Shown here: one piece after another, positions 11,268 to 41,075 of the stretch
Layout: each line of letters begins with the position of its first letter
How positions within the stretch are numbered: position 1 is the stretch's first letter
Source of the DNA: Trichosphaerium sp. ATCC 40318
Lineage: Eukaryota > Protista > Tubulinea
Assembly: GCA_038496445.1 (NCBI GenBank)
Contig: JALMLS010000502.1
Span: forward strand, 62,001 to 126,000
Reading direction: 5' to 3'
DNA length: 64,000 nt
The notes under the pieces: model-generated
Told to the model about the DNA's origin: nothing
What the model saw: the letters and a program-made list of their open reading frames with translations, nothing else
Database searches by the model: none
Translations under genes and position numbers: made by a program

Positions 11268-12598
11268 CTAGCCTGCTACCACAAATGGCGAGCAATTGCT
11301 GCTGAGACGGCGAGGACATGTTGTTAATTTTACTGGTAGGCAGGGTTCATCTTCACAATCAACAGTTTCAATTACAGAACCGTCCACTCGTATACAGCAA
11401 CTAAAAGTCATTAAATAAAAACAAACACTAAATTGCACCTGTCATCATCATTGCCACCACTTATTTGGCCATTAGTTACCACCATGTTTTCGGTTAGGCT
11501 TTCAACAAAAATGGTATCATCTCCATCACCGCCATAAACCAAGCTTTGTGATATTGACGATGGTACTACGTGATTAAGTGCAATAACCAAAAACAATCTC
11601 AAATATTTTTGTACGTATTGTCACTTCTGATACAATCAGCGTGTCATCACCAGCATCACCACACAACTCTTCCATTAGAGAGCAACTGATATAGATATTA
11701 TCATTTCCGAAACCACCTGAAAGGTGAGATACAATTCGAAATAACAACTGCACAAATACCTGATATTCTGAGTACACTACTGCTTTGGATATCGATACAA
11801 TCTTCATCACTTCCTCCATTGACACTTTCCAAAGATGATTGTACCACTCTAAAGCAGTCAAACCCACTTTGTCCACTAAGGATGGACCTTTTCTTAACAA
11901 TTAGTAAACCTTTCTCATCAAGAAAAGTTGTACGGTTCGATGGGACCAACAATTCCTTCAACTATAAAGTGATCATTCCCAGTTCCTCCATTAATTCTAT
12001 CAATAGTGGACTCAGTCGTCTGTATGCAGTCATTACCTGTTCCTGCAATGTTCAAGTTACTAACAGACTGACAAGTAGCACTCACCTGCAGCTATGCTAT
12101 TGCTGATTGTTGCACCTTCAGCAACAATACAATCGCTACCGCCCAGCCCCAATATCTCATTAATGACTGCCTCTGAACCTCTTACAAGGATACAATCATT
12201 GTTGCTGGTCCCCATTATGCCACCAGATACAACTGATTCTACAATCACACAGTCGCCAATATCATTCATTAAAACTATCAACTTTTATTACCAAATATTT
12301 TGTGGATACCAGCAACTTTATGTCACGTGAAAAGAAAAACGCTATTGTTATAAAGAAATAAACCGCTTACCGTTACCATCGCCATCAGCAGTTGCCAGCA
12401 TACAATTATCGCTTTGAAAATCGCAAGCACTACAAGCCATACAATCGCAATCGCATCCAGACGCTTGAGGGAAAGGTGGTTGAGCGTGGTACATGCTTAG
12501 AACTAACAATTAAGGTTAGGTTATCAGTATTTATACGATAATAATTTAGAGATACAAATTATAGCCCCCAGAATACTTATCACGTTTATTCTCTTCAT
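11268..12598 (-). CDS. Secreted Cys-rich RTX-like repeat protein, array copy A (most divergent intact copy)
   Basis: ATG at 12598 (MKRINVISILGAII), SMYHAQPPFPQASGCDCDCMACSACDF, GTSNNDCILV/GLGGSDCIVA/GGFGNDNIYI/GGDGDDTIFV repeats, C-terminal CCIRVDG...CEDEPC...CSPFVVAG*. Confidence 0.8.
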
Positions 12599-12685
12599 CT
12601 TTTGTTAATATCGTCGTGTGTTTGTAGTGTTTATTGCTGTATAAGAAATCTCGGAGTTAATAATAATTGTGATTCTATCTGTACA
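12587..12685 (-). repeat. 5' UTR/start of copy A, duplicated in inverted orientation at 17191-17283
   Basis: Reverse complement aligns nearly base for base with 17191-17283. Confidence 0.85.
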
Positions 12686-13394
12686 TAAAAGAAATCAACA
12701 AGGAATTAGTGATAACTAAGATCTCATAGTGTATTGTAGCTGTTTAATTAAGAAGACTTAAACAAACCAACATGATGTATGACGTTTAAAACTCTTAAAA
12801 ATCAGCTCATGTGTTTTGGAGTGGCACGGTCCATTTCAAAGGGTTGTGGTTTATAACACTAACATAACATGACATCCCTGTTCGTTGTTTATGTCTTCGC
12901 CATTGTACCTATGTACAATGCAAAGGAGTGACATGTGCTTAAATTAGCCCAAAGCGAAGGCACCGTATAAGTAGCAGGCAAATGAAATACAGAACTATTT
13001 CGGTGTTTCTCAAGGTGTTGTGGGTTTGGCAGGTATTTAAGTTCTACAACTCAATGGCTTGAAATTCGTTTGTGTTGAAACAAAAAATGGTTGAGTTTTC
13101 CCATATTTTTCTTAGCTGGGTATGGTCCCAAAAACTTAAACATCTAACTAGCTATAGCCGTTTAGCGACCACCTCTATACTTGTATGAGGACCCAAACAG
13201 CAAATGATTACTAAAGCATTGACAGCACTACACATACTAGCTCTCTTGAGCTTCGCTGGATCCTCTGTTTTTTTACCTGTAAGATTTGAGGCAGAAAAAA
13301 ACGGATGTAAGTCATTGAATATGTCTTACAAAAAGCGTAACATCCCTTGCTCTTGTCGTATTAACGATTTTTTAGAAAATAAAGATAGCCAAAT

Positions 13395-14120
13395 TATAAG
13401 TTCTAAGCATGTACCGCGCTCAACCACCTCCCCTCAAGCATCTGGATGCGATTGTGGTTGTATGTCTTGTAGTGCTTGCAATTTTCTAATGATTGCCCGA
13501 TTGTAACTGCAAACGGTATTGGCAATAGAGACTTTATTAAGTAATTTTCCTTTTTTGCTGTTTTGTCACGTGTAATTTAAAAAAAAAAAGACGCTAATGC
13601 ATGCCTCCAATTTACCAAACGCTCATTTGTACACTTATGAATTACCTAATGAGGACAGTGCAGCTGGACGATATTGGTGGTAATGTGTGATTGTTGAATA
13701 TGTACCTCTTTATATTCTTGGAAAATGATGATTGCATCCTTGTGAGAGGTTCAGGGACAGACGCAGGTAGTATCACTGCTATAAATGGAGATGATTATAT
13801 TCTTATACAAGACTGGGAAACAGTTGTTGGAAATATAAACGCAGGGTAGCAGAACCCAAAGTTATTTATACATAAACAATTTTTTGCCTTATTTATGAAA
13901 TAATGATGTCTGCATAAGCGCGACTCAAGCGACTACAGCAACAATTTTTGCATCTCAAAATGTAATGCAATAGGTCGACTGCGCTTGGACAAGGTGTCAA
14001 CGATTGTATTAAACTTGCGTCCTTTGGTGGCATTCCAACAATACTGGGAAATATTAATTATGGCGGTTAAGATGATTGTATTGATGTTCAAACCAGTTCT
14101 GTACAAACAATTTTAGGTAT
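13395..14120 (+). pseudogene. RTX-like family copy B, inverted and degraded
   Basis: Contains CCTCAAGCATCTGGATGCGATTGTGGTTGTATGTCTTGTAGTGCTTGC (PQASGCDCGCMSCSAC) and remnants of exons 3-5 with frameshifts and stops. Exon 1 and the last exons are missing. Confidence 0.85.
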
Positions 14121-14399
14121 TTTACTTTTAGGTTACTGTGGCTATTACCTGCTATATTATCAACATGTAATCACTGTATCGGTGAATGTATACCAATCAT
14201 GATCACTGCACCTATGAAACAACTTTTAAAAATAAACTTGCAAATTACAGTTTTGTTGTTGCAGCTTTGAAAGAGACACTACACTCAGACAAGTAAAAAT
14301 GTTAGGCTACATTACTATAACAATTAGGCTAGATGATGAATGTATAACATGCTGTAAGGACAGACTGTTAGAACAAAATAATGCATTAAAGTAGTCAAA

Positions 14400-17190: not shown

Positions 17191-17283
17191 TGTACACAAT
17201 CACAATTATTAACTCCGAGATTTCTTTATACAGCAATAAACACTACAAACCACGACGATATTAACAAAGGACGAAGAGAATAA
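17191..17283 (+). repeat. Solo inverted copy of the RTX-like family 5' UTR/start, ATG mutated to ACG
   Basis: Matches the reverse complement of 12587-12685. GATGAAGAGAATAA is GACGAAGAGAATAA here. Confidence 0.85.
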
Positions 17284-17517: not shown

Positions 17518-20500
17518 TCAAACAGCAGCCATTGTGAGTGGTATACATTCACCAATACGACGAAGACATGTTGGTTCTATAAGAGAATTTTTTGCTAAGT
17601 AGTTGATTATTTTAAAATAATTCAATTTCACATCACAGCTTAATCTCACCAAACCAAAAGTTATATATGTTGTGGCATATATATACAAGTTTATAGGACT
17701 CGACTATCAAACACTTCTGAATAGGACAAAGATAGTAATTGTACAAATATAGACTTTTATTGTAAAAAAAATGTAGTTTTTTTCTTTATTTACGGAATAT
17801 ACTCCTTTTGTCCATCCTCAATCGGCTCATCTTGTGCTAGGTGTATATAACTAGTTCCCCTAGAGCGTATTCTACGTTTTGGATTTCTTCTTTGTTTGTC
17901 TCTCTTAGTATTCCATCCATCTTTTTTTGTTGGTTTGGGACTGTTATAACTGAGTTGTATCCTCTTGTCCTCAAGCACCAACTCAGAACCATAACGCATG
18001 GCTACCGTCACAGGCAAAAATCGGATAGGATCACGTCTACAACCCCCACAATTGTGGTTACATGTTCTGTTTGGGCCTTTAGGATCACAACTATATTTAA
18101 CAGAAAATTAGTACTCGCATTTGTTTTTTGCTAACGCACGTGTGTTCACAGTCATCAAAACCATTTTCTGGTATGCCATAGCTAAATTGAAATGCATTTC
18201 GCATAAATGTATCACCAATAGGTTCAGCTGGTTCGAGAACAGGAAAATCATTCACCATGGCTTCTAACATGTACGTATTTTTGAGAGTACGACAAGCATA
18301 TGCAAGGTGCGACAGTTCACTCAGTACAAAGAAATTTCGTATGTACTTATTTTGTAGCTTTTTAGAGCTTGCTGCGGAACCATCAGCTCTGTTGTGAGCA
18401 CGAAGTGGTGCCAAAAACCGCCATATAATATTGGCTCCTGGATCACGTGTTTTTAAGCGCTGTTGAATATTGGCAACAACAGCATGTATAGGGTATGTTT
18501 TAAAATGTTTGCCACATCCATCTGACCTGTAAAGGGTTAGTTGCTGAATAAAGAGAAAATGAAACAACAAAAAAGGTACGTGCCATAGAATAATTTCTTT
18601 GAACAGGTCAAAGAACTTATGTTGGTATAGAAGCTCTAGAACCCACTGTACATAGTCAGCAGTTTGTTTTACCTTTTTATTCTTTTGTTCTTTTTTAACA
18701 GTGAAGTGTAAGTATGTAACACAAGGTTTGTATGTTGAGCGGTTAATAGATGGAATACTTTTCAATTGTGGAGTTGGTTTAGCGTCTTGTTTAAGCTTTT
18801 GTGTGTGTGACATTCGTCGTTTCTTAGGGTTTTTTGCTTGATCTCTTTCCATCTCTTTCTTAGTGCGTCTTTTTCTTTTCTTTTTTTGAGGTTTGTCGAG
18901 AGTTATATTTGATGTTGATGGTGGTTTTGTAGGTGACACCATATACTTCTTCAATGTTTCTGGCAATTCTATTTTGTTCTTCGTTGCTAAAACCAAGACA
19001 AGGATAATGTAGTTAGTTTCCATGTTAGTTTGAGAAGCTGTAAAATCTAGCGTGATAACACCTCTATCAGGTTTTGCTTCAAGATCAAGGTGATCCTTTA
19101 CATACTCATATATCCTAGCACGTGCAAACTCATCTATTGTTTTTAGGTTGGCTATTTCTTTTCGTAGCTTTTGTAGACTTTCCTCAGGTATGCCACTAGT
19201 CACCTTTTCATTCAACTCTGTTACCTTTTCTTGAAGCTTAATAGCTTCCTTAGATTCAAATTTATCACCCTCTCTGACTTGAATTTGTTCGGCATCTACA
19301 AAACGCTCAAACACTGGCCTGCTCACTGTGTCAAGACCTTGTTCTTCTGCCCATGCACAATATGTTAGATACATTGCTTCTTTTGTGCCTCTAAAACGCC
19401 GATTTGTACTACCTAAATGGTTTTGTTAATAAACACATTTTTATTTTAGCCAAAATTGGTGGACTATTTCAACGTGTACTTACCCGATGGAACAACACAA
19501 TTCATCTCAAGCCATTCCAAAATTGTATTCCCCTTATTTCCTAGTTTGTCCCTTCTGAACCCAAGGTCTCGTAGAAAGTAATCAAGAGGTGGACAGCTTC
19601 TAATATTTTGTCTGGCTTTGTTTACTGCTTGAGTTGTTTGGCTGATCATCTTAGCTGTATTCTCTGATATAATCAGCACCAAAAGGTAGTCACAATTACG
19701 TACTATCATCAATGCCATCAAAGAAGGAGAGCAATGCACTTTTACGAACTGGTGAGTTCTTTGAAAGACTCAAATACAGTTGTATTACTCTGTCGACAAC
19801 AATTTTATTCCTCAGTGCCTTTGTTGGTGATTGAGATGGATCTGAATACCTTTTTCTATATGCATTAACCAGCTTTGGATCTCTTTGAGCAAGTAGATGG
19901 TCAACATAAGTTATTATTTCTTTGTGTAAAGCATCCAATTTTCTACGAAAAAATTAGTTGTTTGGATTTTTATGTAAAAAGTGTCAATACCTTTTGCGTT
20001 GCTGATGTGTCCGCAGTGCTTCAAATTGTACTACAGGTCTACCTGGGTTACGCTAAATGCTAAATAAGAATGACATTTTGGCGCTTTTTTTTAGTTGATT
20101 GGCGAAAAACTTGAAACCAGAGGCCCCACCGCCAAGGCCTGCTTTGAAAAGTTGTACACACGTGTAATTAAGCCACAGCTTTGTATACGCAGCTTCAAAA
20201 AAGCAGGCGGTTTCGGTCTACCATACCTTTAGCTCATTTGCATTTTTTTTTCGGCATGTATTGCAAGCAAAGCTGCCCGTAGCGTTTTCTACGCGTGCTA
20301 AAACGCATGGCGAGTATCCAATGAAGTATTCACCTTCTATTTTGTTTAACCTGTTTTCTCCTGACTCCCTATGCTTTTTTTTATCGCAGCACACGCAAAT
20401 AAACCAAATCCTTTCACTTGGATTGCGTTGCATCTGTTGTTGACCAGTAATATGCAAAACTTTCCAAAACCAGAAAAAAACTCGTCAAAAATAGTATTTA

Positions 20501-22043
20501 ATTTTTTTACGCATTTGAGGTACACTTTAACCACAGAAACTTTCTGTGCATGTTTTACACGCATAAATCGTTCCATTGAGAGGTATCAACTGCTTAGCAA
20601 AAAGTTCTCAACAGGTGGACATGTTTCATCTTCACAATTGAATACTTCAAAAACAGAAGGATCTGCACGAGAACAGCAACTACAAAGTAAATCTAATCAG
20701 AAAACGAACTGTATCAAGAAAAACTGGTACCTGTCATTGGGATCGTCAGCTCCACCACCATTTATTCTTCCATTAGTTATACCCATGTTTTGAGTAAGGC
20801 TTTCAACAAGGATTCTATCAGCTCCGTCATCACCATTGACAGCATTCCGATTTGTTGAGTCAGGTTCTACAGTAAATATTAAACCGCTAAAACATCTCAA
20901 GTAGTTTCGTACGTATTGTGACTTCTGATACAATCATTACATCATCACCGTTATTACCTCTCATAGCTACCATCAAAGAACACCTAGCATACATGACATC
21001 ATTCTCACTCCCGCCTTAAACAGGTAAGATGAAATACTTTTATAGAATCAAAGGTTTGTTACCTTCAATATCGAGAACGTCACTGGAGAGAACCTCAACA
21101 CAATCAGTACCAGTAGCTCCAATAACATTTCCCATGGCTGTTGGAATACCGTTGAATGAAGTTACTTTTATACAATCGTTCCCAGAAGCTCCATTCGCCC
21201 TTTTTGATCACTAAGTACACAACTACAACCTTTTTAAACCCGTACTGTGCTCTCACAAACATCATGGTTCCTCGCTTTTCCATCGCGTCCTTTACTTCCA
21301 GCTGTCGCAAAATACTTCCTTCAATTATTATATCGTCATTTCCGTCATTTCCTAGAATATCTCCCGTAGTTGCTTGAGTCGCTCTTATACAATCATTATC
21401 TTTGCCTACATGTCAAATTAAAAATAGTGGATCTAAAAATAGTTTGATTTCGGTTTTTCGAACTCACCTCCTATTGTACGTTCCTGTACTATTGCTCCAT
21501 CGTTGATTATAATACAATCGTCTCCATCTCTACCATGTATTTCATTTATGATTGCCCCTGAACCTCTTACAAGGATGCAATCATTGGCATTTGTTCCACG
21601 AATCTGTCCAGTTACAGCCGATTCTACAATCACACAATTGCTGCCAATGTCGTCCAACCGCACTAATAGTCATCATTTATAACTGTACAAGATTGTTTAC
21701 GAAACTGAAAGTAAAAAAAGTTCAGAGAATTAAATGTGCGACAACAAAAATATGGTAAAAAAAAAGATACCAAAAAAAAAAAAAAAGGTAAAAACGTCTG
21801 TTCACTTTTGCGCAAAAAGAACTTACCATCACCGTTACCATCTGCGGTTGCCGTCATACAACCAGATTCAAAGTCGCAAGCACTACAAGCCATACACTCA
21901 CAGTCGCATCCAGACGCTTCTGGTAAAGGTGGTTGAGCGTGGTACATGCTTAGAACTAATATTGGTTATTTACAAAAAGTTGGTGGTGTATAGATACAGA
22001 TAGTAATCCATAGAATACAAGCCAAGTTTATTGTAGTTGTCAT
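17518..22043 (-). CDS. RTX-like family copy C, last exon interrupted by a DNA transposon
   Basis: Exons run 22043-20610 and resume at 17582-17518 (IEPTCLRRIGECIPLTMAAV*). Removing 17583-20611 restores CPPVIEPTC, matching CPPIIEPTC in copy E. Confidence 0.9.
17583..17607 (+). repeat. Left terminal inverted repeat of transposon
   Basis: GAGAATTTTTTGCTAAGTAGTTGAT. Confidence 0.9.
17790..20433 (-). CDS. Intron-containing DDD-type transposase (Sola2-like)
   Basis: VITLDFT (D1), IILW|SDGCGKHFK (D2), WRFLAPLRAHNRADG (D3) parallel the Sola-type DF...SDG..QFK...HGK..CDG pattern. N-terminal CVCC...CNTC and C-terminal CEHTC...CNHNCGGC are Zn-binding-like. About 6 short introns. Confidence 0.8.
20585..20609 (-). 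repeat. Right terminal inverted repeat of transposon
   Basis: Reverse complement is GAGAACTTTTTGCTAAGCAGTTGAT. Confidence 0.9.
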
Positions 22044-23139: not shown

Positions 23140-23723
23140 GCTCTACTTCTTCTAATCTAATGTCGTCACTGTTATCCCCTCTGCTAATTATTCCTATTGT
23201 TGATGCAGTACTGCAATTATTGCCAAGCTCCTGAAAAGATACATACAAAGTTATCATCAAATATCATTCGTGAATGTTACCTTTGGTTTTTTTCCGCACC
23301 TGTCCATGTGTATTTTTCAAGATTGCTATTGAATAAAATCACAATTGCTTTGAATGTCCTCCATTAACACTAAACATGCCTTAGCTTGAGAAAGGGTAGC
23401 ACTTGATTCAAATCCTTTCAATAGACGTATTTTTAAATCACGTGACACAAAAAAACAAAACTAGGTGAATAGAATGGTGTACTTTAAACAAAGCGCGAAA
23501 TAACGTTCCAAAGCCATCATCGCTAGCTGTTACAGTCATACAACCATTATGAAAATCGCAAGCACTACAAGCCATACACCCACATGCGCATCCAGACGCT
23601 TGAGTTAAAGGTGGTTGGGCGTGGTATATGCTTAGAACTGACAATTGGGGGTAAGGGTGTTCAGTAATTTAAAAATTAGTCTCTAGATACAGATTGTAAT
23701 CCACGGAAACAGATCACGTTCAT
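23140..23723 (-). pseudogene. RTX-like family copy D, truncated and degraded
   Basis: Exon 2 is recognisable (YHAQPPLTQASGCACGCMACSACDF). Exon 1 is frameshifted and only remnants of exons 3-4 remain. Confidence 0.85.
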
Positions 23724-23825
23724 TCACTATTGTGCTATAGGTAAACACAAAGAACTTTTAGTGTATTCACTGCGTCTTTAATAAACACTTTCTGTAGTAT
23801 TAGTGCACTATTTCAGCTATAGCTA

Positions 23826-28803: not shown

Positions 28804-30284
28804 TCAAGGTCTGGTAGCCACGAATGGTATACATTCACCAATACGACGATGGCAAGTTGATACTCTAATAGGTGGACATGTCTCATCTTCACAATCGATT
28901 ACTTCAAAAACAGAAGGGTTTGCACGAGAACAGCAACTACATTTAAACAACAAAGATCAGAAAAGAATAAACTATTTTTTTGTATGTACCTGTCATTAGG
29001 ATCAGCTCCACCACCAGTTATTCGTCTATTAGTACTACCTGTTTGATCTAGGCTTTCAACAAGAATTCTATCACCTCCAGCACCACCATTGACAACATTC
29101 CGCTTAACAGGGAATGCAAATCCTAAGCGGAAATCTTAGCTACAATATCATCTCAAGTTATTTCGTACGTATTGTGACTTCTGATACAATCATTACATCA
29201 TCACCATCACCTCCATTCATGTTTGTCATTGAAGAACAACTGGCATACATATGATCGTTCCCATTGCCCCCTTAGATGATAAGATAAATGAAATGTCAAA
29301 GTTGATAGTATTGTAAAATACCTAAAATAGCAGATACGTCACTAGTTTGAACATCAACACAATCATCATCACCACCTCCATTAACATCTCCTGTAAATGG
29401 TTGAGCACCATTAAATGGAGTCAATTTAATACAATCATTCCCAGCTTCTCCATTTATTGAAGTCCTCATGAAAGTACTGTAAACTGAATTAAAACAGCTT
29501 CCAACATTAACGTATCTTACGGAGACGTCATTCCCGGGCTGGGACCCTCAATCTGTATAACGCTCCCTTCAACTATTATGTCATCATTTCCATTGCCTCC
29601 TTGAATATCTGAAGCTGTTGATGCAGTGACTCTTACACAATCATTATCATCTCCTGAACAACTGTCAAATTTAGAGATCCATGTCAACACTGTCTGTTTT
29701 ACCTGCGTTTGTTATTCCCAAAACTGTTGCTTTATCCTGTATAATAATGCAATCATCTCCATTTCTACCATTGATATCTCCTACCCTTACACCTACACCT
29801 CTTACAAGTATACAATCATTGTCATTTGTTCCAGTAATCTCATTAAGCACATTTGATTGTACAATCACGCAATTACTATCAATGTCATCCATTGACACTA
29901 CAAAACTGATGATAAGCTCCAAAATGAACCGACGGAAAAAAATAACACTTAATGGATGCTGACAATAATAGCACATGGCATTTCAAAATTCTTTGAGAAG
30001 CTCTCACGTGGTAACAGATTAGTACAATGACTACAAAACAGCAAATAAAGAACGCACCAATTCCATCACCGTTTGCAGTTACAGTCACACAACTATTTAG
30101 AAAATTGCAAGCACTACAAGCCATACACCCACAATCGCATCCACGTACTTGCGGTAAAGGTGGTTGAGCGTGGTACATGCTCAGAACTAACAAATTGTTG
30201 TCAGGTTATCATTATTTACTTTAAAATTAGTCTCTGGATACAGATTGTAATCCATAGAATATAAATCACGTTTATTGTATTCAT
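28804..30284 (-). CDS. Secreted Cys-rich RTX-like repeat protein, copy F
   Basis: Same exon set. ATG at 30284, stop at 28804 (...ECIPFVATRP*). Confidence 0.88.
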
Positions 30285-30934: not shown

Positions 30935-32474
30935 TTAAGGTACATCGACCATGAATGGTATGCATTCACCAAGTCGACGAATACATGATAATATAGGGCA
31001 TGTGTCATCTTCACAATCTATTACTTCAAAAACAGAAGGATCTGCACGAGAACAGCAACTAAAAAGTAAATCTAAATCCGAAAATAGACTTGAATAATAA
31101 TTGTTTGTACGTGTCATTGGGATCGTCTCCACCAGTTATTCGTCCATTAGTTATACCCATGTTTTGAGTGAGGCTTTCAACAAGAATTCTATCATCTCCA
31201 GCTCCACCATCAACAGCATTTTGCTTTGTTGAGAATGATTCTAAATTGAATGTAAGTGAAAAGTAAATGTTAACATATTATGGTGTACGTATTGTGACTT
31301 TTGATACAATCATTACATCATCACCATCATCTCCGTTCATGTTTTCCATCAAAGAACAACTGGCGTATATATGATCGTTCCCATCACCCCCTTAGTATGA
31401 TAAGATTACATGTCATGTACTGTTGAAGAAAATCAAAAAAACCAAAACAAGTACCTGAAATAGCGAGTACGTCACTACTTTGAACATCTATACAATCATT
31501 ATCATTGCCTCCAATAACGTCTCCTGTCATTGTTTGATCACCATTAAATGGAGTCAATTTAATACAATCATTCCCAGCTTCTCCATTCAAGAAAGTCCTG
31601 TAAACTGAATGAAAAAAAAAACAAAACCATCTTTAGTCTTACGGAAAAATTGCTCCTCGTTTGTCACCCTGAATCTCAACAACACTTCCTTCCACTATTA
31701 TGTCATCATCGCCATTACCTCCTTCAAGTGTAGCAGCTTTCGATTCAGTCACTCTTATACAATCATTGTCATCTCCTACACAAGCATATAAATAATGTTA
31801 CACTTTGTTTGCTTTTGTACCTAGATTTGTAATTCCGTCGATGACAGCTCCGTCATTGATAAGAATACAATCATCTCCACTTCTACTATTGATTTCGTTT
31901 ATGAACGTCAAAGGTCCTCTTATTAAGATGCAATCATTGCCAGTTGTTCCTTGTACCTCACCACGTACTGAAGACGAGGCAATAATCACACAATTAGTAC
32001 CGATGTCGTCCATTATCACTAGTAACATGTTGGTTTGTAAGCTTGCAAATGAGAGATTCGTAAATTGAAAATACACTTGTGTTCTACGTACACCACGTGA
32101 TAAAAAAAGAGAAAAACAAAAAGACGAAATTGCGCTAACAAAACAAAACCCAACACTTGGTTGGCTATTGTAGTTGTAATCATATTTCCGCATTAAATTA
32201 AAAGGAAAGAAACAAGTTCCAAAAAAATATTTGATAAAGAACTTACCATCGCCGTTGCCATCTATGATTGCTGTCACACAATTATCGCTTTCAAAATCGC
32301 AAGCACTACAAGCCATACATTCACAATCGCATCCACGAACTCGAGGTAAAGGTGGTTGAGCGTGGTACATGCTTAGCACTAACAATTGAGGTTAGGTTAT
32401 CATTATTTACTTTATAATCGGTCGATAGTACAGATTGTAATCCACAGAATACAAATCACGTGTATTGGCTTCAT
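30935..32474 (-). CDS. Secreted Cys-rich RTX-like repeat protein, copy G
   Basis: Same exon set. ORFs 31798-32385, 31384-31590 and 30935-31132 cover exons. Confidence 0.88.
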
Positions 32475-33012
32475 CTTTTGCTTCAGCTGTTGTTTTAAGG
32501 TTTAACAATATCAAAGAGTTAAGGATTTTGACTCTGAAGTTGTATACGTGTGACTAAACACTGTAGTGCTTTTTCGCTTGTAATACAGAATAGTTGTGAC
32601 TTGTGCATTTCTGGAGTTTATTTCGAAGACTTAAACACTTTACAAGAGATATCCACAGAGCTATGTAAGCATATGAATACTCTCTGGGCAATTTCAGAGA
32701 ACTCGGATAATCATCGGACAAACTTTAAGCTTAAGCATATGTGAGCTTAAACACCAACCGCTGTCCGAAAAAAGATATATAGGCTCTTGAGACGACGAAG
32801 TGGCACGTTTTAGTCCTTCGAACCGTTCTTTTGGAGCCTTACTGCAGAAAACAGCGCGTTTTTAAGTCAATCGTGGCTCTAATCAATTTCGCGAAAAGTA
32901 GTGCAAACCCTTAAGTATACTCGATGAATAAACTCCTCTATTCTTCTCGCTAACTTATAGGTACAACTGTGAAGATTGGCTTCAAACATGTAAGCTTGCT
33001 GTAGATTCTGGT
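32475..33012. repeat. ~550-bp upstream segment triplicated ahead of copies G, J and K
   Basis: Near-identical to 37985-38547 and 41076-41628 (e.g. GGGCAATTTCAGAGAACTCGGATAATCATCGGACAAACTTTA, AATCAATTTCGCGAAAAGTAGTGCAAACCCTTAAGTATACTC). Confidence 0.9.
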
Positions 33013-33480
33013 ATTGTCCGTATCATAAGTTTGCTAATCTTTGAGGTTTTTCCATTTTCTCGCGAGGTTAATACTCCTCTTTACGCCTGAATATGTGCCA
33101 GTATTCGCGCTTGGTGCTGGTAAGTTAACAGTAAATCATTATTAATTTGTACCCGTTTATGGCTCCTTGGGGTGAGTAGTAATGCGAGCGCACCTAAGAA
33201 AAATACTGCGATCGTCTTGTTGGATGATATGACTTTGGCACAATGCTTTTTTGCCTTGCCTTTATGTACGTTGTCATGAGTGAAAGAATGTGATGCATTC
33301 ACATTGCACTGGTTCCGTCAAGTTGTTATCAAAGCTGTCAGTTCTTGCAAGAACTATCAAAACTGACAAGCCATTTACAGAAAACTATAGCTCTGTTTAA
33401 CCTCAGCCTTTCGGTTTATATACTTTTTTGTATCAAAGTGAAGATTTGGTGGAATTGAAATAAAAGGTACAATGTTTACT

Positions 33481-35049
33481 TTAAGGTACATCGACCATGA
33501 ATGGTATGCATTCACCAAGTCGACGAATACATGATAATATAGGGCATGTGTCATCTTCACAATCTATTACTTCAAAAACAGAAGGATCTGCACGAGAACA
33601 GCAACTACAAAGTAAATCTAAATCAGAAAATATGCTTGAATAATAATTGTTTGTACCTGTCATTGGGATCGTCTCCACCAGTTATTCGTCCATTAGTTAT
33701 ACCCATGTTTTGAGTGAGGCTTTCAACAAGAATTCTATCATCTCCAGCTCCACCATCAACAGCATTCTGCTCTGTTGAGAATGATTCTAAGTGAATGTAA
33801 GTGAAAAGTAAGTGTTAACATATTATGTTGTACGTATTGTGACTTCTGATACAATCATTACATCATCACCATCATCTCCGTTCATGTTTTCAATCAAAGA
33901 ACAACTGGCATATATATGATCGTTCCCATCACCCCCTTAGTATGATAAGTGATGTTAATGTGACAGTTGATAGTATCGTTGAAGAACCTAAAAAAAAACC
34001 AATACAAGTACCTGAAATAGTGAATACGTCACTACTTTGAACATCTATACAATCATTATCATCGCCTCCAATAACGTCTCCTGACATTGTTTGAACACCA
34101 TTAAATGGAGTCAATTTAATACAATCATTCCCAGCTTCTCCATTCAAGAAAGTCCTGTAAACTGAATGAAAAAAAAAACAAAACCATCTTTTGTCGTACG
34201 GAAAAAGTGCTCCTCGTTTGCCACCCTCAATCTCAACAACACTTCCTTCCACTATTATGTCATCATCGCCATTACCTCCTAGAAGTATACCAACATCCAC
34301 TTCAGTCACTCTTATACAATCATTATCATCTCCTAGACAACAAGGTAAATAGCTGTCGCGACATGTAGTGTCGTATTTTTTACCAGCGTTTATCATTCCC
34401 TGAGCGGCAGCTGCATCCTCGATAATAATACAATCATCTCCACTTCTGCCATTGATTTGGCTTACGAACGTCGATGTCCCTCTTATACGGATGCAATCAT
34501 TGCCAGTTGTTCCTTGTAACGCAACAACAAGTGAAGGTGCTTCAATAGTCACACAATTAGTACCAAGGTCGTCCATTATTACTAGCAACATGTTTGTTAG
34601 TAAGCTTGCGAATGAAAGATTCGCCAATTAAGGATAGGCTCTGGTATATTTCGATCTATTTTTTAAATAGCACGTGACAAAAGCAGAAAACAAAAAAAGA
34701 ACCAAAAAAAGGTTCTTGACACTTGTGTAGCTTTGCTTATGCTGCTGTAGGTATCATCGCATATTTTTGCATAAATTAAACGGGAAGTGATAAAATGTAC
34801 GGCATAAAAAGAACTTACCATCCCTACGACCCCTTACGACTAAATTCATACAAGTATTGCTTTCAAAATCGCAAGCACTACAAGCCGCACAACCACAATC
34901 GCATCCACGAACTCGAGGTAAAGGTGGTTGAGCGTGGTACATGCTTAGCACTAACAATTGAGGTTAGGTTATCATTATTTACTTTATAATCGGTCGATAG
35001 TACAGATTGTAACCCACAGAATACAAATCACGTTTGTTTTCTTCATCAT
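33481..35049 (-). CDS. Secreted Cys-rich RTX-like repeat protein, copy H
   Basis: Same exon set. ORFs 34754-34957, 33929-34627 and 33481-33678. 3' part nearly identical to copy G. Confidence 0.88.
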
Positions 35050-35109
35050 TTGTAGTTGTATTATCGGTTTTGGCAATCTAAGGAGTTACTGATTCACTTC
35101 TTGGTCTTG

Positions 35110-36035
35110 TTTGGGTAAAAAAAAAGTCCAAATCTGAAACAATAATTACATCATCACCATCATTTCCATTCATAGTGTCCATCAAAGAACCGCTTGCGTA
35201 TATATGATCATCCCATCGCCCCTTATCATTGGTACATAAGATTCAATCTGATGGTTGATTGTACGCATACTCAAATAACATATGAACAAATACCTGAAAC
35301 GTCGCTAGTTTATCTGCATCAACAATCATCATCACCTCCATTAACATCTCTTGTAATGGTTGAATGCCATTAAACAATCATCACCAGCTTCTCCATTTAT
35401 GAAAAGCTTGAAAATAGAATGTCCTTTAGCTTGAATAAAAAAACAACCAACTTTATTCTTATGGTAGTGCAATTCATCGTTTGACACCAGACCCTTACTT
35501 CCCTCCACTAGTATGTGATCAGTTCCACCACATCCTTGAAGTGTCCCAGATGTTGATGCAGTAACTGTAGTCATTTTCATCTCCTAAACAAACCAGTAGT
35601 TTTACTTGTTGGTTTGTTTTACCTGTTGGTCATATCACCACTTATCCTCTTCTAAGGATACAATCATTGCCTGTTGTTCCTTCTCGCCCAATAGTTGATT
35701 CAACAATCACATAATTAGTCCCAAGGTCGTCCAGTATCACTAGTAACAATTTTTTGCAGCATAGAATGAAGGATTGGTAAATTACAGACACAAAGTTTAC
35801 AATAATAAAAAAGAAATTGGTACCATAATTCCACTTAATAGGTACTATTTAAAAATACTGCATAAAAAGCACCAGACATTTGAGATTTCTGTTCAAAATC
35901 GCAAGCAGTACAAGCCACATTCGCAACCGCATACACGAGCTCGAGGTACAGGTGAGCGTGGTCCATGCCTAACACTAACAATTGCGCTTAGGATATCATC
36001 ATTTATTTTAATAAATCGGTAGATACATATTCACG
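35110..36035 (-). pseudogene. RTX-like family copy I, degraded
   Basis: Remnants of exons 2-6 with deletions and frameshifts (e.g. INGEAGDDC, GCGGTDHILVEG). Final exons absent. Confidence 0.8.
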
Positions 36036-36444: not shown

Positions 36445-37984
36445 CTAGCCTAGCATTATGGTACAGAGACTAGTAACGCCACTAAGTCGACGAGTACACA
36501 TTGATACAGGACATGTTTCATCTTCACAATCTATTACTTCAAAAACAGAAGGATCTGCACGAGAACAGCAACTACAAAGTAAATCTAAATCAAGAAAATA
36601 TGCTTGAATAATAATTGTTTGTACCTGTCATTGGGATCGTCTCCACCAGTTATTCGTCCATTAGTTATACCCATGTTTTGAGTGAGGCCTTCAACAAGAA
36701 TTCTATCATCTCCAGCTCCACCATCAACAGCATTTTGTTCTGTTGAGGTTGATTCTAAGTGAATGTATGTGAGTATACATTACATACAATCTAATGTTAT
36801 TTCGTACGTATTGTGACTTCTGATACAATCATTACATCATCACCATCATTTCCATTCATAGTGTCCATCAAAGAACAACTGGCATATATATGATCGTTCC
36901 CATCACCCCCTTAGTATGATAAGATTCTTGTTATAACTACCTGAAAAAAAATACCTGAAATAGTAAATGAAAAGCTAGTTTGAACATCAATACAATCATT
37001 GTCATCACCTCCATTAATAGCTCCTGCTAAACTCGGACCAGTAAATGGAGTCAATTTAATACAATCATTCCCAGCTTCTCCATTTATGAAAGCCCTGAAA
37101 TAGAATGAAAAAAACAAATCCATCTCTAATATCTTCTTACGGCATTCCTATCCCTCGTTTTTGATTATCCCCAATTGCCCCTCCTTCCACTATTATGTTA
37201 TCATCGCCATTACCTCCTTGAATTCCGTTAGCTGTCGCTTGAGTGACTCTTATACAATCATTGTCATCTCCTACACAAGCATATAAATAATGTTACACTT
37301 TGTTTGCTTTTGTACCTAGATTTGTAATTCCCTCGATGAAAGCTCCGTCATTGATAAGAATACAATCATCTCCACTTCTACTATTGATTTCGTTTACTAA
37401 CGTCGAAGGTCCTCTTATTAAAAAACAATCATTGCCAGTTGTTCCTTGTAGCTCACCACTTACAAGTGAAGATGAATCAACAATCACACAATTAGTACCA
37501 AGGTCGTCCATTATCACTAGTAACATGTTGGTTTGTAAGCTTGCAAATGAGAGATTCGTAAATTGAAAATACACTTGTGTTCTACGTACACCACGTGATA
37601 AAAAAAGAGAAAAACAAAAAGATGAAATTGCGCTAACAAAACAACCCAACACTTGGTTGACGGCTTTATTTATGCTATTGTAGTTGTAATCATATTTCCG
37701 CGTTAAATTAAAAGGAGAGAAACAAGTTCCAAAAAAATATTTGATAAAGAACTTACCATTGCCGTTGCCATCTGCGGTTACAGTCACACAATTATCACTT
37801 TGAAAATCGCACGCACTACAAGCCATACATTCACAATCGCATTCACGAACTCGAGGTAAAGGTGGTTGAGCGTGGTACATGCTTAGAACTAACCTCAATT
37901 GTTAGGTTATCATTATTTACTTTAAAATCGGTCGATAGTACAGATTGTAATCCACAGAATACAAATCACGTGTATTGCCTTCAT
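36445..37984 (-). CDS. Secreted Cys-rich RTX-like repeat protein, copy J
   Basis: Same exon set. Ends TCPVSMCTRRLSGVTSLCTIMLG*. Confidence 0.88.
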
Positions 37985-38547
37985 CTTTTGCTTCAGCTGT
38001 TGTTTTAAGGTTTAACAATATCAAAGAGTTGAGGATTTTGACTCTGAATCAATATCTCAGTTGTATACGTGTTACTAAACACTGTATTGCTTTTTCACTT
38101 GTAATACAGAATAGTTGTGACTTGTGCGTTTCTAGAGTAGTTATTCCAAAGACTTAAACACTTTACAAGAGATATCCACAGAGCTATGTAAGCATGTGAA
38201 TACTCTCTGGGCAATTTCAGAGAACTCGGATAATCATCGGACAAACTTTAAGCTTAAGCATATGTGGCCTTAAACACCAACGGATGTCTGAAAAAAGATA
38301 TATAGGCTCTTGAGGCAATGAAGTGGCATGTTTTATTCCTTCGAACCGTTCTTTGGAGCGTTACTGCAGAAAACAGCACGTTTTTAAGTCAATCGTGGCT
38401 CTAATCAATTTCGCGAAAAGTAGTGCAAACCCTTAAGTATACTCAAACACCTCTATTCTTCTCACTAACTTATAGGTACAACTGTGAAGATTGTCTTAAA
38501 ACATGTAAGCTTGCTGTAGATTCTGGTATACTATAGTACTTAACATA
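37985..38547. repeat. Upstream segment duplicate (copy J)
   Basis: Near-identical to 32475-33012 and 41076-41628. Confidence 0.9.
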
Positions 38548-39620
38548 GGCATTGCAAGTCTACGAACAGCGTTTTAACAATAGTGGATGTATCACAATGG
38601 GTAAAATGTCAAAAAATGTCAAATGTCAAAGCTTGGCTCATTCTTTCGCTCTGTGGTTGCATACTTACAAGCCCATTTTTTTTCTTTTACAACAGAAAAT
38701 TGGATTTTGTCCACTACCCATGAAAGAAGCGTGTAACTTTGTCAAATTTTGTTGTCAATTTTCCCAACAACAAAACTTCATGGAACAGTGACCAAGTGGT
38801 TTCCCAGTGTTCCTCAGAGTTGGTTTTCGTATGCGCCGCGTTAAGAACTAGTCATCAGTAACAGTAATACGCCGAAAGTTAACTAACACAACTCTTTTAT
38901 TTGATAGGAAAGTGAATTAAAAAGCTCCAATACCTCGCAAATAACCATAAGCACCACATACCTTTCCAGTAAAGTTCTCTGGGGTAATTTGCTTTTTACG
39001 CCCAAGGGTCATTAGAATGTAAAATGGACATGTACACTCTAATGTAAATGAAAAAGTTAACATAGAAGTCAAAGCTATGAAGTACAGGCTAACACTAGCA
39101 TGAGCATACCTTGTAGAGTTAATCCCAAATCACTAGCGAACCACAGAAAGAAACTTGACAACAAGTGTTTTGTCCAATTTAGATACAACGCTAATGGTAC
39201 CTAGCCATACCAGCAATCAAATATAGTGTACCTGTGCCATCTGCTGGAGCCACCTTACATTTTAGTACAATGACATTCTGTTGATGCTTTCTATTGTCAG
39301 TGCCACATATTCATGTAGTGGTACATTGCTAACACTTTTCTTGGCTTCAAAAAAAGTTGGTGGTCTTACGAAATATCTCTGTGTGCGCTGAATAGATTTT
39401 TTCGTACAATCTTAAATAGATTTGAGCATCTGCAAGCCTTTTACAGAAAACTATAGCATCAACCTGTTATGGTAACAATAGTAGAACTTAGGTAATGAAC
39501 TTATAACACTAATTAACAGCATTGACTGTATTGGCATTAAGGTGCCTTACAAGGTTTATATGTATACTAATTGTGGATATACTGAAGGTCAAATGATCGA
39601 AAATTGTGCTAGATCGTTCT

Positions 39621-41075
39621 TTAGCGACTAGGCATGGCACTAAGGCGACGAGTACACACAAAAGGACATGTTTCATCTTCACAATCTACAACTTCAAAAA
39701 CAGAAGGATCTGCACGAGAACAGCAACTACAAAGTAAATCTAAATCAGAAAAACCAAGTTGAAACAAAAATTGTCTGTGGACCTGTCATTATCGGTGGCA
39801 CCAGTTATTCTCCCATTAGCTATACCCATGTTTTGAGTGAGGCTTTCAACAAGAATTCTATCATCTCCAGCTCCACCATCAACAGCATTCTGCCCTGTTA
39901 GTAATAGTTCTAAGTGAATATAAGTGAGTATACATTACATACAATCTAATGTTATTTCGTACGTATTGTTACTTCTGATACAATCAATACGTCATCACCT
40001 CTATTTCCGTTCATGGTTTGCATCAAAGAACAACTGGCATATATATGATCGTTCCCATTGTCCCCTTAGAAGATAAGATGAATGAAGTGTCAAAGTTGAT
40101 AGTATTGTAGAATACCGAAAATAGCGAGTACGTCACTAGATTGAACATCAATACAATCATTGTTACCACCTCCATTAACATTTCCTGCTAAACTTGGACC
40201 GGCAAATGGAGTCAATTTAATGCAATCATTCCCAGCTTCTCCATTTATGGAAGCCCTGATATTATCCCCAACTCTCCCTCCTTCAATTATAATGTCATCA
40301 TCGCCATTACCTCCTTGAATTCCGTCAGCTGTCGATTCAGTGACTCTTATACAATCATTGTCATCTCCTACACAAAGCATATAAATAATGTTACACTTTG
40401 TTTGCTTTTGTACCTAGATTTGTAGTTCCCTCGATGACAGCTCCATCATTGATAAGAATACAATCATTTCCACTTCTACTGTTGATTTGGGTTACGAACG
40501 TCGAAGGCCCTCTTATTAAAAAACAATCATTGCCAGTTGTTCCTTGTATCTCACCACGTACAAGTGAATCAACAATCACACAATTAGTACCGAGGTCGTC
40601 CATTATCACTAGTAACATGTTGGTTTGTAAGCTTGCGAATGAGAGATTCGTAAATTGAAAATACACTTGTGTTCTACGTACACCACGTGATAAAAAAAGA
40701 GAAAAACAATAAGATGAAATTGCACTAACAAAACAACCCAACACTTGGTTGACGGCTTTATTTATGCTATTGTAGTTGTAATCATATTTTCGCATTAAAT
40801 TAAAAGGAGAGAAACAAGTTCCAAAAAAATATTTGATAAAGAACTTACCATTGCCGTTGCCATCAGCGGTTGCTGTCACACAATTATTGCTTTCAAAATC
40901 GCACACACTACAAGCCATACATTCACAATCGCATTCACGAACTCGAGGTAAAGGTGGTTGAGCGTGGTACATGCTTAGAACTAACCTCAATTGTTAGGTT
41001 ATCATTATTTACTTTATAATCGGTCTATGTACAGGTTGTAATCCACAGAATACAAATCACGTGTATTGCCTTCAT
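39621..41075 (-). CDS. Secreted Cys-rich RTX-like repeat protein, copy K (lacks intron 4)
   Basis: Same family. Exons 4 and 5 are fused (ORF 40090-40380). Ends TCPFVCTRRLSAMPSR*. Confidence 0.88.

Follow-up and report, generated by a model that had tools for sequence, protein, structure and literature searches.

The locus described here raises the question of what kind of protein is encoded by a run of related genes whose repeats resemble those of bacterial RTX proteins, and how such genes came to be amplified in a marine amoebozoan amoeba. Our analyses covered a stretch of 64,000 nucleotides from Trichosphaerium sp. ATCC 40318 (hereafter the window), which agrees with the published genome of this strain (PMC10521059) in GC content (37.7% in the genome), intron length (75 bp on average) and the number of exons in a gene (about 8). 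Gene modelling has identified, in the ~30 kb from 11268 to 41075, eight intact minus-strand genes together with about four decayed copies or remnants. With a confidence somewhat above even, we hold that the observations, taken together with the mechanism proposed below, are best explained by a eukaryotic gene family, restricted to one lineage, that forms a tandem array evolving by birth and death. The members of the array and their shared flanking region are as follows.

Copy A: 11268..12598, minus strand, intact, 8 exons (12556-12598, 12371-12502, 12086-12274, 11934-12042, 11760-11887, 11615-11716, 11439-11565, 11268-11400), 320 aa; diverges most, being 52-57% identical to the remaining copies
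Copy B: 13400..14118, plus strand, inverted pseudogene with remnants of exons 2, 3 and 5, a frameshift past the leader and in-frame stops
Solo exon 8 (C-terminal cap exon): 17536..17583, minus strand, remnant of 48 nt, LIEPTCLRRIGECIPL
Copy C: 20586..22043, minus strand, 8 exons (21998-22043, 21827-21955, 21468-21662, 21261-21405, 21063-21199, 20913-21014, 20731-20866, 20586-20679), 327 aa; C-terminal cap truncated, lacking the last two Cys; exon 4/5 junction doubtful
Copy Cb: 23498..23724, minus strand, 5' fragment with exons 1-2 only; cap exon still open, sequence further downstream unrelated
Copy D: 25957..27417, minus strand, intact, 8 exons (27375-27417, 27193-27324, 26876-27064, 26695-26827, 26500-26642, 26334-26435, 26139-26265, 25957-26080), 330 aa; GC donor (GC-AG boundary) in intron 3
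Copy E: 28804..30284, minus strand, intact, 8 exons (30242-30284, 30058-30186, 29703-29897, 29521-29653, 29322-29464, 29169-29270, 28990-29122, 28804-28936), 336 aa
Copy F: 30935..32474, minus strand, intact, 8 exons (32432-32474, 32247-32378, 31821-32018, 31643-31775, 31455-31597, 31289-31390, 31111-31240, 30935-31058), 334 aa
Copy G: 33481..35046, minus strand, intact, 8 exons (35004-35046, 34819-34950, 34384-34581, 34200-34332, 34012-34154, 33834-33935, 33657-33786, 33481-33604), 334 aa
Copy G': 35105..36031, minus strand, degenerate pseudogene, exons 2-6 recognisable as remnants
Copy H: 36445..37984, minus strand, intact, 8 exons (37942-37984, 37757-37888, 37316-37516, 37141-37270, 36955-37094, 36808-36909, 36625-36754, 36445-36571), 334 aa; tail of the C-terminal cap unlike that of other copies
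Copy I: 39621..41075, minus strand, intact, 7 exons (41033-41075, 40849-40980, 40414-40608, 40116-40367 [fused 4+5], 39963-40064, 39783-39909, 39621-39726), 318 aa
Upstream region of ~550 bp: F 32475..33014, H 37985-38529, I 41077-41629, minus strand, 90-92% identity among the three; likely the promoter that they have in common and the 5' flank of the unit that was duplicated

Complete open models were obtained for copies A, C, D, E, F, G, H and I (318-336 aa), and the outer limits proposed in a first-pass annotation, 11268 and 41075, are exactly the stop codon of copy A and the start codon of copy I. The same annotation described 11 paralogs with a common 8-exon structure, which holds for seven of the intact genes; in copy I a genomic deletion of ~64 nt, which took the end of exon 4 together with the first part of intron 4, has left 7 exons. 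The remaining copies have decayed, and only 8 of the 11 are intact. The introns (38-240 nt, GT-AG) occupy conserved positions, the 8-exon models are open throughout, and when the copies are aligned as DNA the exons are conserved and the introns between them divergent. A six-frame translation of the window contains 10 instances of the cap motif C.C.C..C..C, always between 12.4 and 40.9 kb, and the window has 56 instances of the coil motif, G..[GND].D[CDHTRV][ILVM].[ILVA], which is confined to the minus strand and to 11.5-40.3 kb, compared with means of 0.00 and 0.24, respectively, in 100 simulated Markov-1 sequences with the dinucleotide composition of the window. The array is flanked on either side by eukaryotic genes (viz. 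F-box/WD40, LRR and MORN), and the GC3 of its genes is host-like, so that a compositional trace of transfer is absent.

The wider family is transcribed and spliced in the same strain. All close relatives are transcripts of Trichosphaerium sp. ATCC 40318 from one JGI sample, one of them labelled MMETSP0405 / taxid 498012, and the transcript of a paralog bears out splice junctions 1-2, 2-3, 4-5 and 7-8; intron 4 is retained in transcript L001, and P0034 is fully spliced. The window's own copies were not found among the public proteins and transcripts searched, and it is at the level of the wider family and its junctions that the expectation of transcription is borne out.

The intact genes encode acidic proteins (pI <= 4.05, D+E 14-18%) consisting, from N- to C-terminus, of a hydrophobic leader, a CxCxCxxCxxC cap, a series of coils and a Cys-rich C-terminal cap. 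The leader (..SMYHA/QPPLP) and both caps, the second reading CC..C..C..C..C, had been noted in the first-pass annotation and are present in the gene models; where it estimated ~9-10 coils of about 19-24 aa, the models have 10-11 coils, which range from 18 to 31 aa (mode 19-21). The sole hydrophobic segment is an N-terminal core of ~12 residues. Each coil contains one RTX-type nonapeptide (G-G-x-G-N-D-C-I-x) within the register [IV]-N-G-G-x-G-N-D-C-[IV]-x-V-x-x-S-x-[VI]-x-x, in which the Asp is conserved in 91% and the Gly residues in 75-78%, and a row of Asx residues is formed by N or D in 84% of coils. A Cys directly follows the Asp of the Ca-turn in six coils (1-4 and 6-7). In most copies the mature protein contains 19 Cys, and since this number is odd at least one Cys must be unpaired or paired between molecules. 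Purifying selection is strong on the Ca-turn motif (dN/dS 0.18) and on the Cys-ladder position (0.03), with a value of 0.45 for the core, and the exposed turn residue, the x of GGxGND, is free to vary (1.40, from only 10 codons and non-independent pairs). Whole-gene dN/dS is 0.3-0.4 for old pairs and 0.6-1.15 for recent pairs.

This protein type is so far undescribed in eukaryotes, as the first-pass annotation had supposed, whereas the fold itself is known from bacteria. Searches of exons and full-length relatives against Pfam and NCBIfam gave no model above cut-off, no characterised eukaryotic family was matched there, and no paper in the literature searched connects Trichosphaerium with such proteins. 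The label "RTX-like" is apt in that every coil has a single GGxGxDxUx nonapeptide, but scores against PF00353 (14.7 and 21.2) lie below its gathering cut-off of 23. Against the PDB, the best match of the family profile is 3P4G, the ice-binding adhesin domain of Marinomonas (E=1.8e-17, with five or more coils aligned in register); for classical RTX proteins the E values are no better than 0.002-0.05. The beta-solenoid had been set beforehand as a refutable proposal, and AlphaFold (AF2) predicts it confidently both for the transcribed paralog P0034 (pLDDT 84.4, pTM 0.83) and for an 83-aa piece encoded in the window by exons 4-5 of copy I (pLDDT 90.1). Foldseek places 3P4G first for both models (TM 0.46-0.61), and the Marinomonas layout suggested earlier is therefore the nearest by sequence profile as well as by predicted fold.

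[quoted passage not shown] Sequence profile and predicted fold show that the amoeba proteins are similar to it in having a repeat of ~19-21 aa (GGxGNDC[IV]xV compared with xGTGNDxuxu... in MpIBP), one RTX-like Ca turn per coil, 10-13 coils in about 300 aa, and an Asx row along the Ca-turn face. They differ in being free-standing eukaryotic proteins with a predicted signal peptide and introns, whereas the MpIBP domain lies inside a 1.5-MDa T1SS adhesin; the Cys-rich caps and the Cys after the Ca-binding Asp are absent from 3P4G, and the MpIBP repeat has a second 'GG' corner that the amoeba family does not conserve. Most coils satisfy the GGxGxDxUx consensus of the classical RTX beta-roll (PF00353 HemolysinCabind; viz. 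serralysin, CyaA and lipases), many PF00353 proteins come up in profile searches (E=1e-20 to 1e-4), and the 83-aa model can be superposed, with a TM of 0.60, on block V of CyaA. However, classical RTX proteins have contiguous 9-aa repeats, two per turn, and a C-terminal T1SS signal, where the amoeba family has one nonapeptide per ~19 aa and a putative N-terminal signal peptide, and its matches to solved RTX proteins are marginal. Also related are LapA-type RTX adhesins and autotransporter passengers (e.g. Campylobacter concisus P0014, P0002; P0005, P0007, P0008), whose 19-20-aa GxGxD[TI]I repeats also make one turn per coil and which are the best non-amoeba matches of the exon-3 profile (E down to 4e-20); unlike the amoeba proteins they are giant, Cys-free and bacterial, are exported by T1SS or type V secretion, and bear retention modules or beta-barrels. 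One further relative, P0033, has a vWA domain fused to a related Cys-ladder module, an adhesion-type context.

We propose that the protein would enter the ER through its short N-terminal signal peptide and be secreted as an acidic rod of ~310 aa, a right-handed beta-solenoid of 10-11 coils closed at both ends by Cys-rich knots. Judging from the sequence, each coil would bind one Ca2+ through its RTX-type turn (G-G-x-G-N-D), giving about 9-10 Ca2+ ions along one edge as in the Marinomonas domain, and the Cys row of coils 1-4 and 6-7 may staple or pack the coils by inter-coil disulfides or a buried thiol stack; at seawater Ca2+ the rod would be rigid. The Ca-turn face, with its conserved Asx row next to a hypervariable residue, could then serve as a repetitive binding surface diversified among paralogs, and our best guess at function is an extracellular coat (test) or an adhesion/ligand-binding protein. 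Bacteria were probably the ancient source of the fold type, with introns, signal peptide and Cys caps gained later and amplification following; the likeness to bacterial proteins appears at the level of the repeat.

A different origin is possible, if rather less probable: the resemblance to RTX proteins and MpIBP may be convergent, or the fold may have come from a giant virus or another eukaryote, with the rest as described. The common motif is short and dictated by structure, codon composition is host-like, and none of the bacterial relatives searched has Cys caps or a Cys ladder; the Cys-ladder-vWA relative lies on a 70%-GC, intron-free, gene-dense contig atypical of bacteria, adjoining an Rpb5-like and a heliorhodopsin-like gene, and Trichosphaerium carries many giant-virus genes (PMC10521059). 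Yet the 3P4G match, at its E value of 1.8e-17, spans the whole 19-aa period over several coils, dozens of bacterial one-turn-per-coil proteins are matched by the family profile, and a scan of viral contigs and viral structure models returned nothing specific. There is a negligible probability that we are dealing with bacterial contamination or with a repeat that is dead and without function, for although the nearest non-amoeba relatives of the array are bacterial and four copies have decayed, such an origin is contradicted by position-conserved spliceosomal introns, spliced paralog transcripts and host-like GC3, and the eukaryotic neighbours and the purifying selection on motif and Cys positions also count against it.

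As regards function, the coat or adhesion role has to be set against three others. An improbable one is calcite binding or organisation of the spicule matrix, the family's flat, 4.8-Å-periodic Ca2+/Asx row gripping calcite faces as MpIBP grips ice and so shaping or nucleating the hollow spicules of the spiculate life stage. Trichosphaerium does build calcite spicules (PMC11575492), the proteins are predicted to be secreted and are very acidic and repetitive, as are many biomineral proteins, the nearest solved relative binds a crystal face, and the absence of the window's copies from transcriptomes of the non-spiculate form fits, weakly, with stage-specific expression; however, the Ca-binding turns themselves account for most of the acidity, and expression is known for paralogs from a strain maintained as non-spiculate gamont, which makes those, at any rate, not specific to spicules. 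A role as secreted toxins or lytic factors directed at prey, like that of RTX cytolysins, would fit the RTX-type motif, secretion and the fast divergence of recent duplicates, but is very unlikely, as the mature protein is solenoid and caps throughout, without a pore-forming hydrophobic region, acylation module or enzymatic domain, and the bacterial proteins nearest to it are adhesins and autotransporter passengers rather than cytolysins. We consider an antifreeze or ice-binding role less likely still: 3P4G is the best match by sequence and fold and the Asx row of its ice-binding face is retained, but the Thr row that completes the ice array (consensus PMC3492233) is not conserved, Thr occurring in 9% at the most variable site, so that ice binding is not expected, and the strain was collected from seaweed on a California beach.

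For the favoured coat or adhesion role, a parallel is provided by the diatom Trailins (CAA/pAdhesive_15), in which a marine protist secretes a beta-helical, IBP-like fold of bacterial origin that serves adhesion and not ice binding (bioRxiv 10.1101/2023.03.06.531300). The likeness is one of functional analogy only, since Trailins, unlike the amoeba family, have a DUF3494/IBP-1-like fold with a long helix and no Ca-turn repeat, and the two share no sequence relationship.

Our analyses have identified a tandem gene family in the window (GC content 37%), in which a six-frame scan placed all of the C.C.C..C..C cap motifs (n=10) and all of the coil motifs (n=56), the latter marking a repeat of about 19 amino acids (aa), at 11.5-40.9 kb. 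Every one of the 56 coil motifs lies on the minus strand, and the mean chance expectation in simulated sequences with the window's dinucleotide composition was 0.00 caps and 0.24 coils. When the copies are aligned at the DNA level, strongly conserved blocks alternate with divergent short segments bounded by GT...AG, and gene models whose splice sites were chosen by a frame-guided search yielded eight genes (A and C-I), each with a complete open reading frame. The first-pass annotation had described 11 paralogs with a common structure of eight exons, and its outer limits, 11268 and 41075, agree exactly with our gene models. Its count resolves into 8 intact genes, the rest being 3 decayed copies and one scrap found by tblastn with the models.

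Members of the gene family (intact copies from start to stop; decayed copies as located by tblastn)
12598-11268, minus strand: copy A, intact, 320 aa
13400-14118, plus strand: copy B, inverted pseudogene with stops and frameshifts
17536-17583, minus strand: last-exon remnant of 48 nt
22043-20586, minus strand: copy C, intact, 327 aa
23498-23724, minus strand: copy Cb, only exons 1-2 kept
27417-25957, minus strand: copy D, intact, 330 aa
30284-28804, minus strand: copy E, intact, 336 aa
32474-30935, minus strand: copy F, intact, 334 aa
35046-33481, minus strand: copy G, intact, 334 aa
35105-36031, minus strand: copy G', degenerate copy
37984-36445, minus strand: copy H, intact, 334 aa
41075-39621, minus strand: copy I, intact, 318 aa

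The proposed structure of eight exons holds for seven of the eight intact genes, with introns of 38-240 nt, and does not extend to the decayed copies or to copy I, from which intron 4 has been lost through a genomic deletion of about 64 nt. This deletion extended from the last part of exon 4 into the beginning of the intron, and the seven bases that are left (ATATCAG), the old acceptor included, have been exonised in frame. Intron 3 of copy D is of the GC-AG type (donor GCAAAT at 26876/26875) with the frame intact; it may belong to the rare GC-AG class or have arisen by recent mutation of the splice site. Intron 2 of copies F, H, and I (228-240 nt; regions 31798-32385, 37293-37898, and 40391-40990, minus strand) has a length that is a multiple of three and no in-frame stop, so that its retention would add 76-80 residues between the N-terminal cap and coil 1 with the frame kept; its translation is Phe/Ser/Leu-rich and non-coding in look, and intron 2 of copy G contains two stops.

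Pairwise identity between the copies is 52-82%, and about 550 bp of upstream sequence is common to copies F, H, and I at 90-92% identity. Because of this shared upstream sequence and the presence of four decayed copies, the array is to be regarded as a typical birth-and-death tandem family. The segment 12601-12860, just upstream of copy A, recurs inverted at 17041-17268 (73% identity) near the last-exon remnant at 17536-17583, which suggests an old and mostly decayed inverted duplication.

All of the intact copies encode the elements described in the first-pass annotation, viz. a hydrophobic leader, an N-terminal cap, a series of coils, and a Cys-rich C-terminal cap. The leader, M-K-x-I-x-V-I-C-I-L-W-I-T-I-F-L-S-M-Y-H-A followed by Q-P-P-L-P, is a probable cleavable signal peptide, since it has a hydrophobic core of about 12 residues and no further segment is hydrophobic enough for a membrane span. 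It is followed by the cap CxCxCxxCxxC...C, 10-11 coils, and the C-terminal cap CC-x12-C-x4-C-x(4-7)-C-x(5-7)-C. Pooled over coils and paralogs, the coil register is [I/V]-N-G-G-x-G-N-D-C-[I/V]-x-V-x-x-S-x-[V/I]-x-x, with nonapeptide conservation of G 78%, G 46%, x, G 75%, N/D 84%, D 91%, C 60%, and I/V 82%, and each coil (18-31 aa, spaced mostly at 18-24 aa) consists of one canonical RTX nonapeptide (GGxGxDxUx) and about 10 non-RTX residues. The Cys that follows the conserved Asp is found in coils 1-4 and 6-7, a 4+2 pattern that is invariant in 8/8 genes and is also kept in distant relatives (e.g., P0009 and P0013). The mature proteins contain 17-20 Cys, with 19 in most copies, and are very acidic (pI <= 4.05), with K+R making up just 3-6% of residues.

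The structure to which this family shows the greatest likeness is region IV of MpIBP, the ice-binding domain of the Marinomonas primoryensis RTX adhesin (PDB 3P4G). In a hmmsearch of all PDB sequences with the family profile (A2), 3p4g_A was the best match (E=1.8e-17, 66.7 bits), in three overlapping stretches over profile positions 91-259 that hold the 19-aa register for at least 5 coils, whereas CyaA, serralysins, and lipases reached merely E=0.002-0.05. Full-length analyses used P0034, a complete 334-aa transcript product that is 53-62% identical to the window copies, and the window's own model was made from its longest stop-free piece, the 83-aa fused exon 4-5 of copy I. Both AlphaFold2 models consist of regularly repeating short strands, in accord with the beta-solenoid that had been predicted, and both Foldseek searches ranked 3P4G first. 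For P0034, modeled with the family alignment (pLDDT 84.4, pTM 0.83), 3P4G was matched with a probability of 1.00 and TM 0.46-0.53, followed by generic right-handed beta-helices (TM 0.2-0.35); for the 83-aa piece (pLDDT 90.1, pTM 0.80), it was matched with a probability of 0.82, TM 0.61, and rmsd 3.2 Å, followed by RTX beta-rolls such as CyaA block V (TM 0.60). The Foldseek E-values were weak for both models, as is usual for repeats.

MpIBP region IV comprises 13 repeats of about 19-21 aa with the consensus xGTGNDxuxuGGxuxGxux, is Ca2+-dependent, and binds ice via a flat Thr/Asx array at RTX positions 3 and 5 (PMC3492233, PMC5014055). The array proteins share its layout, viz. a repeat of about 19-21 residues in which a u-x-u strand comes after a single xGxGND Ca turn, and keep the Asx row of position 5 (84% of coils), whereas the Thr row of position 3 has no counterpart in the amoeba family, where this position has 9% Thr and the highest entropy of the repeat. 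They also differ in context, as MpIBP region IV is part of a giant RTX adhesin that also has a T1SS signal and a retention module, whereas the array proteins stand alone at 318-336 aa; among the relatives, such a module was seen only in the bacterial P0014. The family resembles MpIBP region IV at a level that profile comparison indicates to be one of homology, with a predicted solenoid fold. Ca2+-dependent folding with one Ca2+ per coil would be a putative feature, on which conservation of the ligand Asp and Gly residues and a dN/dS of 0.18 for the turn motif have a bearing.

An assignment to the classical RTX family (PF00353) would agree with the nonapeptide in each coil, and the first-pass annotation had proposed an RTX-like family. 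The consensus GGxGxDxUx is indeed present, and the scores remain below the Pfam gathering cut-off of 23 bits (best window exon 14.7, exon 6 of copy E; best relative 21.2, P0036), with most window exons and full-length relatives giving no PF00353 match. Classical RTX proteins have contiguous tandem nonapeptides with a 9-aa period, two per beta-roll turn, and are exported by type I secretion, for which they have a C-terminal signal that is not cleaved, and lack an N-terminal signal peptide, whereas the array genes are eukaryotic and contain introns, and their products have a single nonapeptide in every 18-31-aa coil, a hydrophobic leader at the N-terminus, and a C-terminus rich in Cys. No Pfam family exceeded its gathering cut-off on any window exon or full-length relative, and NCBIfam gave no match. 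The match of the N-cap exon to CYSTM (PF12734; 19.7 bits against a cut-off of 25.2) was taken as compositional. A beta-helix lyase or tailspike (PL1, PL6, or P22 TSP), for which TM > 0.5 and a catalytic Lys/Arg/Ca site were required, is disfavored by TM values of 0.19-0.35 and rmsd of 11-15 Å, and a polysaccharide lyase in general by the low K+R content and the lack of Pfam lyase matches.

Hence, as judged from profiles and predicted models, the array represents a eukaryotic, putatively disulfide-capped and ER-routed variant of the known MpIBP-region-IV/RTX-like Ca2+ beta-solenoid. As the first-pass annotation had suspected, Pfam, NCBIfam, and a literature search gave no record of a eukaryotic family of this kind. 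To our knowledge, the beta-solenoid with one Ca turn per coil has so far been limited to bacterial RTX adhesins and a single solved structure; here the same predicted fold would form a stand-alone eukaryotic secreted protein equipped with a signal peptide, Cys-knot caps, and a conserved row of Cys, whose genes contain spliceosomal introns and have multiplied into a fast-evolving tandem array. The models thereby assign a putative fold to genes that are probably among the 7,489 ORFans reported for the Trichosphaerium genome.

The family is rare, in that a search with the exon-3 profile (A1) gave only 33 matches among 1.84 billion representative proteins. The Cys-bearing matches are P0001/P0034, P0009, P0011/P0036, P0013, P0015, P0016, P0019, and P0022/P0037; those that are traceable lie on short contigs of the single JGI sample 3300016894, and P0016 is labeled MMETSP0405, TAXON_ID 498012, i.e. 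Trichosphaerium sp. ATCC 40318 (Amoebozoa). The traceable capped, Cys-bearing matches thus come from one amoeba strain and one GC-rich organism. The genome of strain ATCC 40318 has a GC content of 37.69%, a mean intron of 75 bp, a mean exon of 154 bp, and about 8 exons per gene (PMC10521059), and a CDS GC of 0.40-0.44 with a low GC3 of 0.20-0.36 is common to the window genes and the MMETSP0405 transcripts. The cDNA of P0034 has junctions 1-2, 2-3, and 7-8 exactly as in the window gene models. In the JGI transcript contig L001 a 44-nt GT...AG intron is kept at the intron 4 position (554-598), splitting the reading frame into P0001 and P0035, and this intron is spliced out in P0034, an MMETSP re-assembly product; therefore both isoforms occur in the RNA of the culture. 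An exact 22-mer is common to all eight copies and L001 and had no match among metagenome contigs, a collection that evidently lacks the MMETSP sample. From the relatives and the composition, the window is very probably derived from Trichosphaerium sp., in which case P0034 and the other relatives would be paralogs at other loci; no window-encoded protein was found verbatim in public collections.

The other matches to the exon-3 profile come from bacteria and lack Cys. Among them are giant proteins built of GxGxD[TI]I repeats with a period of 19-20 aa; P0014 and its kin from Campylobacter concisus, which are RTX adhesins in view of their LapA-type retention module; and the autotransporter passengers P0005, P0007, and P0008, with a beta-barrel in P0007. 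A family-profile search of a 5.8-billion set added many PF00353-annotated "Ca2+-binding RTX toxin-like" proteins (E=1e-20 to 1e-4), none of which shows the Cys features; this search, in which bacterial RTX proteins made up most of the matches, overlooked known members such as P0009 and is not a census of the family. The same type of search gave no match with P0034 as query.

A second, GC-rich lineage is represented by P0033, P0028, and P0040. In P0033, the N-terminal 200 aa can be aligned to the family (hhalign probability 98%, E=3.4e-14) over a region that takes in three Cys-ladder coils and part of the cap, and its solenoid is followed by a vWA domain and a Pro/Thr-rich tail. Its contig (L007; JGI 3300031965 Ga0326597_10008860, gene 2356-4809) is 70% GC, intron-free, and gene-dense and also encodes a subtilase, and a longer ENA copy adds Rpb5-like and heliorhodopsin-like genes; the source may be a GC-rich eukaryote or a giant virus. 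This lineage shows that the capped form exists outside Trichosphaerium. Many bacterial and giant-virus genes have been reported from the Trichosphaerium genome (PMC10521059), and since the fold is otherwise bacterial, an ancient lateral acquisition is plausible, after which introns, a signal peptide, and Cys caps would have been gained and the family then amplified. The similarity to bacterial proteins is at the level of the repeat, and the codon composition of the family is fully host-like. No bacterial Cys-bearing intermediate was found, a genome-contig scan with P0014 yielding Campylobacter concisus adhesins and no Cys-bearing bacterial form, and three viral-contig scans and a BFVD fold search gave nothing specific for a viral route. 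The family would offer a clean case in which to study how an export fold of bacteria, folded by Ca2+, is adapted to the ER and its oxidative folding pathway.

Whole-gene dN/dS is 0.31-0.40 for old pairs of copies and 0.6-1.15 for recent pairs, reaching 1.15 for copies F and G (dS 0.09), and differs between structural classes of codons.

dN/dS by structural class
Cys-ladder position: 0.03
Ca-turn motif: 0.18
inward-facing hydrophobics: 0.45
caps: about 0.5
far side of coil: 0.74
exposed x of GGxGND: 1.40 (10 codons only; pairs not independent)

These values indicate that selection maintains the scaffold along with the Ca ligands and the row of Cys, which argues that the intact copies are functional now or were recently. 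The face matching the ligand-binding face of MpIBP is, on these codon comparisons, apparently free to change or driven to do so, and the predicted product would be a compact solenoid scaffold, capped by disulfides, of which one face varies.

In the mechanism that we propose, the proteins would enter the ER via the signal peptide, after which the caps would undergo oxidative folding. Binding of one Ca2+ per RTX-type turn would then give a rigid rod in the 10 mM Ca2+ of seawater, with a binding face that repeats along the row of Ca ions. The Cys row could form disulfides between neighboring coils, the 4+2 count allowing three pairs, or could instead be packed as a thiol stack; the odd total of 19 Cys would leave one Cys for a possible intermolecular link.

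We favor a role in the cell coat (test) or in adhesion/ligand binding, because the strain in which the paralogs are expressed, a non-spiculate gamont isolated from the seaweed Sargassum, bears a membranous test, vWA is joined to a related module, and the relatives in bacteria are adhesins. Surfaces that are periodic or anionic, e.g., polysaccharides or prey envelopes, would be candidate ligands, and the family would be a candidate part of the test or adhesive apparatus, still poorly understood, of an amoeba that grazes on seaweed and sometimes calcifies. Specific tests contradict each of the readings as ice binding, toxin activity, enzymatic lyase activity, and contamination; for ice binding, the Thr and Asx array is not conserved in the amoeba family, as its position 3 is the most variable and has few Thr. 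The most interesting alternative would be calcite binding in the spiculate stage. The spicules of Trichosphaerium are calcite (PMC11575492), and the family could be a eukaryotic crystal-face binder in which the flat Ca2+/Asx lattice of the ice-binding type has been re-tuned to calcite, with stage-specific paralogs, silent in the non-spiculate gamont, templating or shaping the hollow spicules. We consider this reading improbable; if true, it would mean that protein-level control of a biomineral was borrowed from a bacterial adhesin fold.

Several other genes lie within and beyond the array. A single-exon ORF of 365 aa with F-box and WD40 Pfam matches (15189-16286, minus strand), located between copies B and C, had no homolog and no exact match in the protein collections searched. 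Two ORFs of 425 and 334 aa without Pfam match (18097-19374 and 23826-24830, both minus strand) may have no relation to the family and simply lie among its members. No tRNA or Rfam features were found in the window. Downstream of the array, a 45-nt tandem repeat of 8.7 copies (45953-46355, plus strand) within the ORF 45933-46514 encodes the Pro/Gln/Tyr-rich peptide repeat YPPQPTPSYQQPPGG, and further repeat-protein genes (51515-51998, 53806-54594, 55159-55839, and 62428-63875) include an RNI-type LRR array with DNA repeats of 63-66 nt, a MORN-repeat ORF, and further LRR ORFs.
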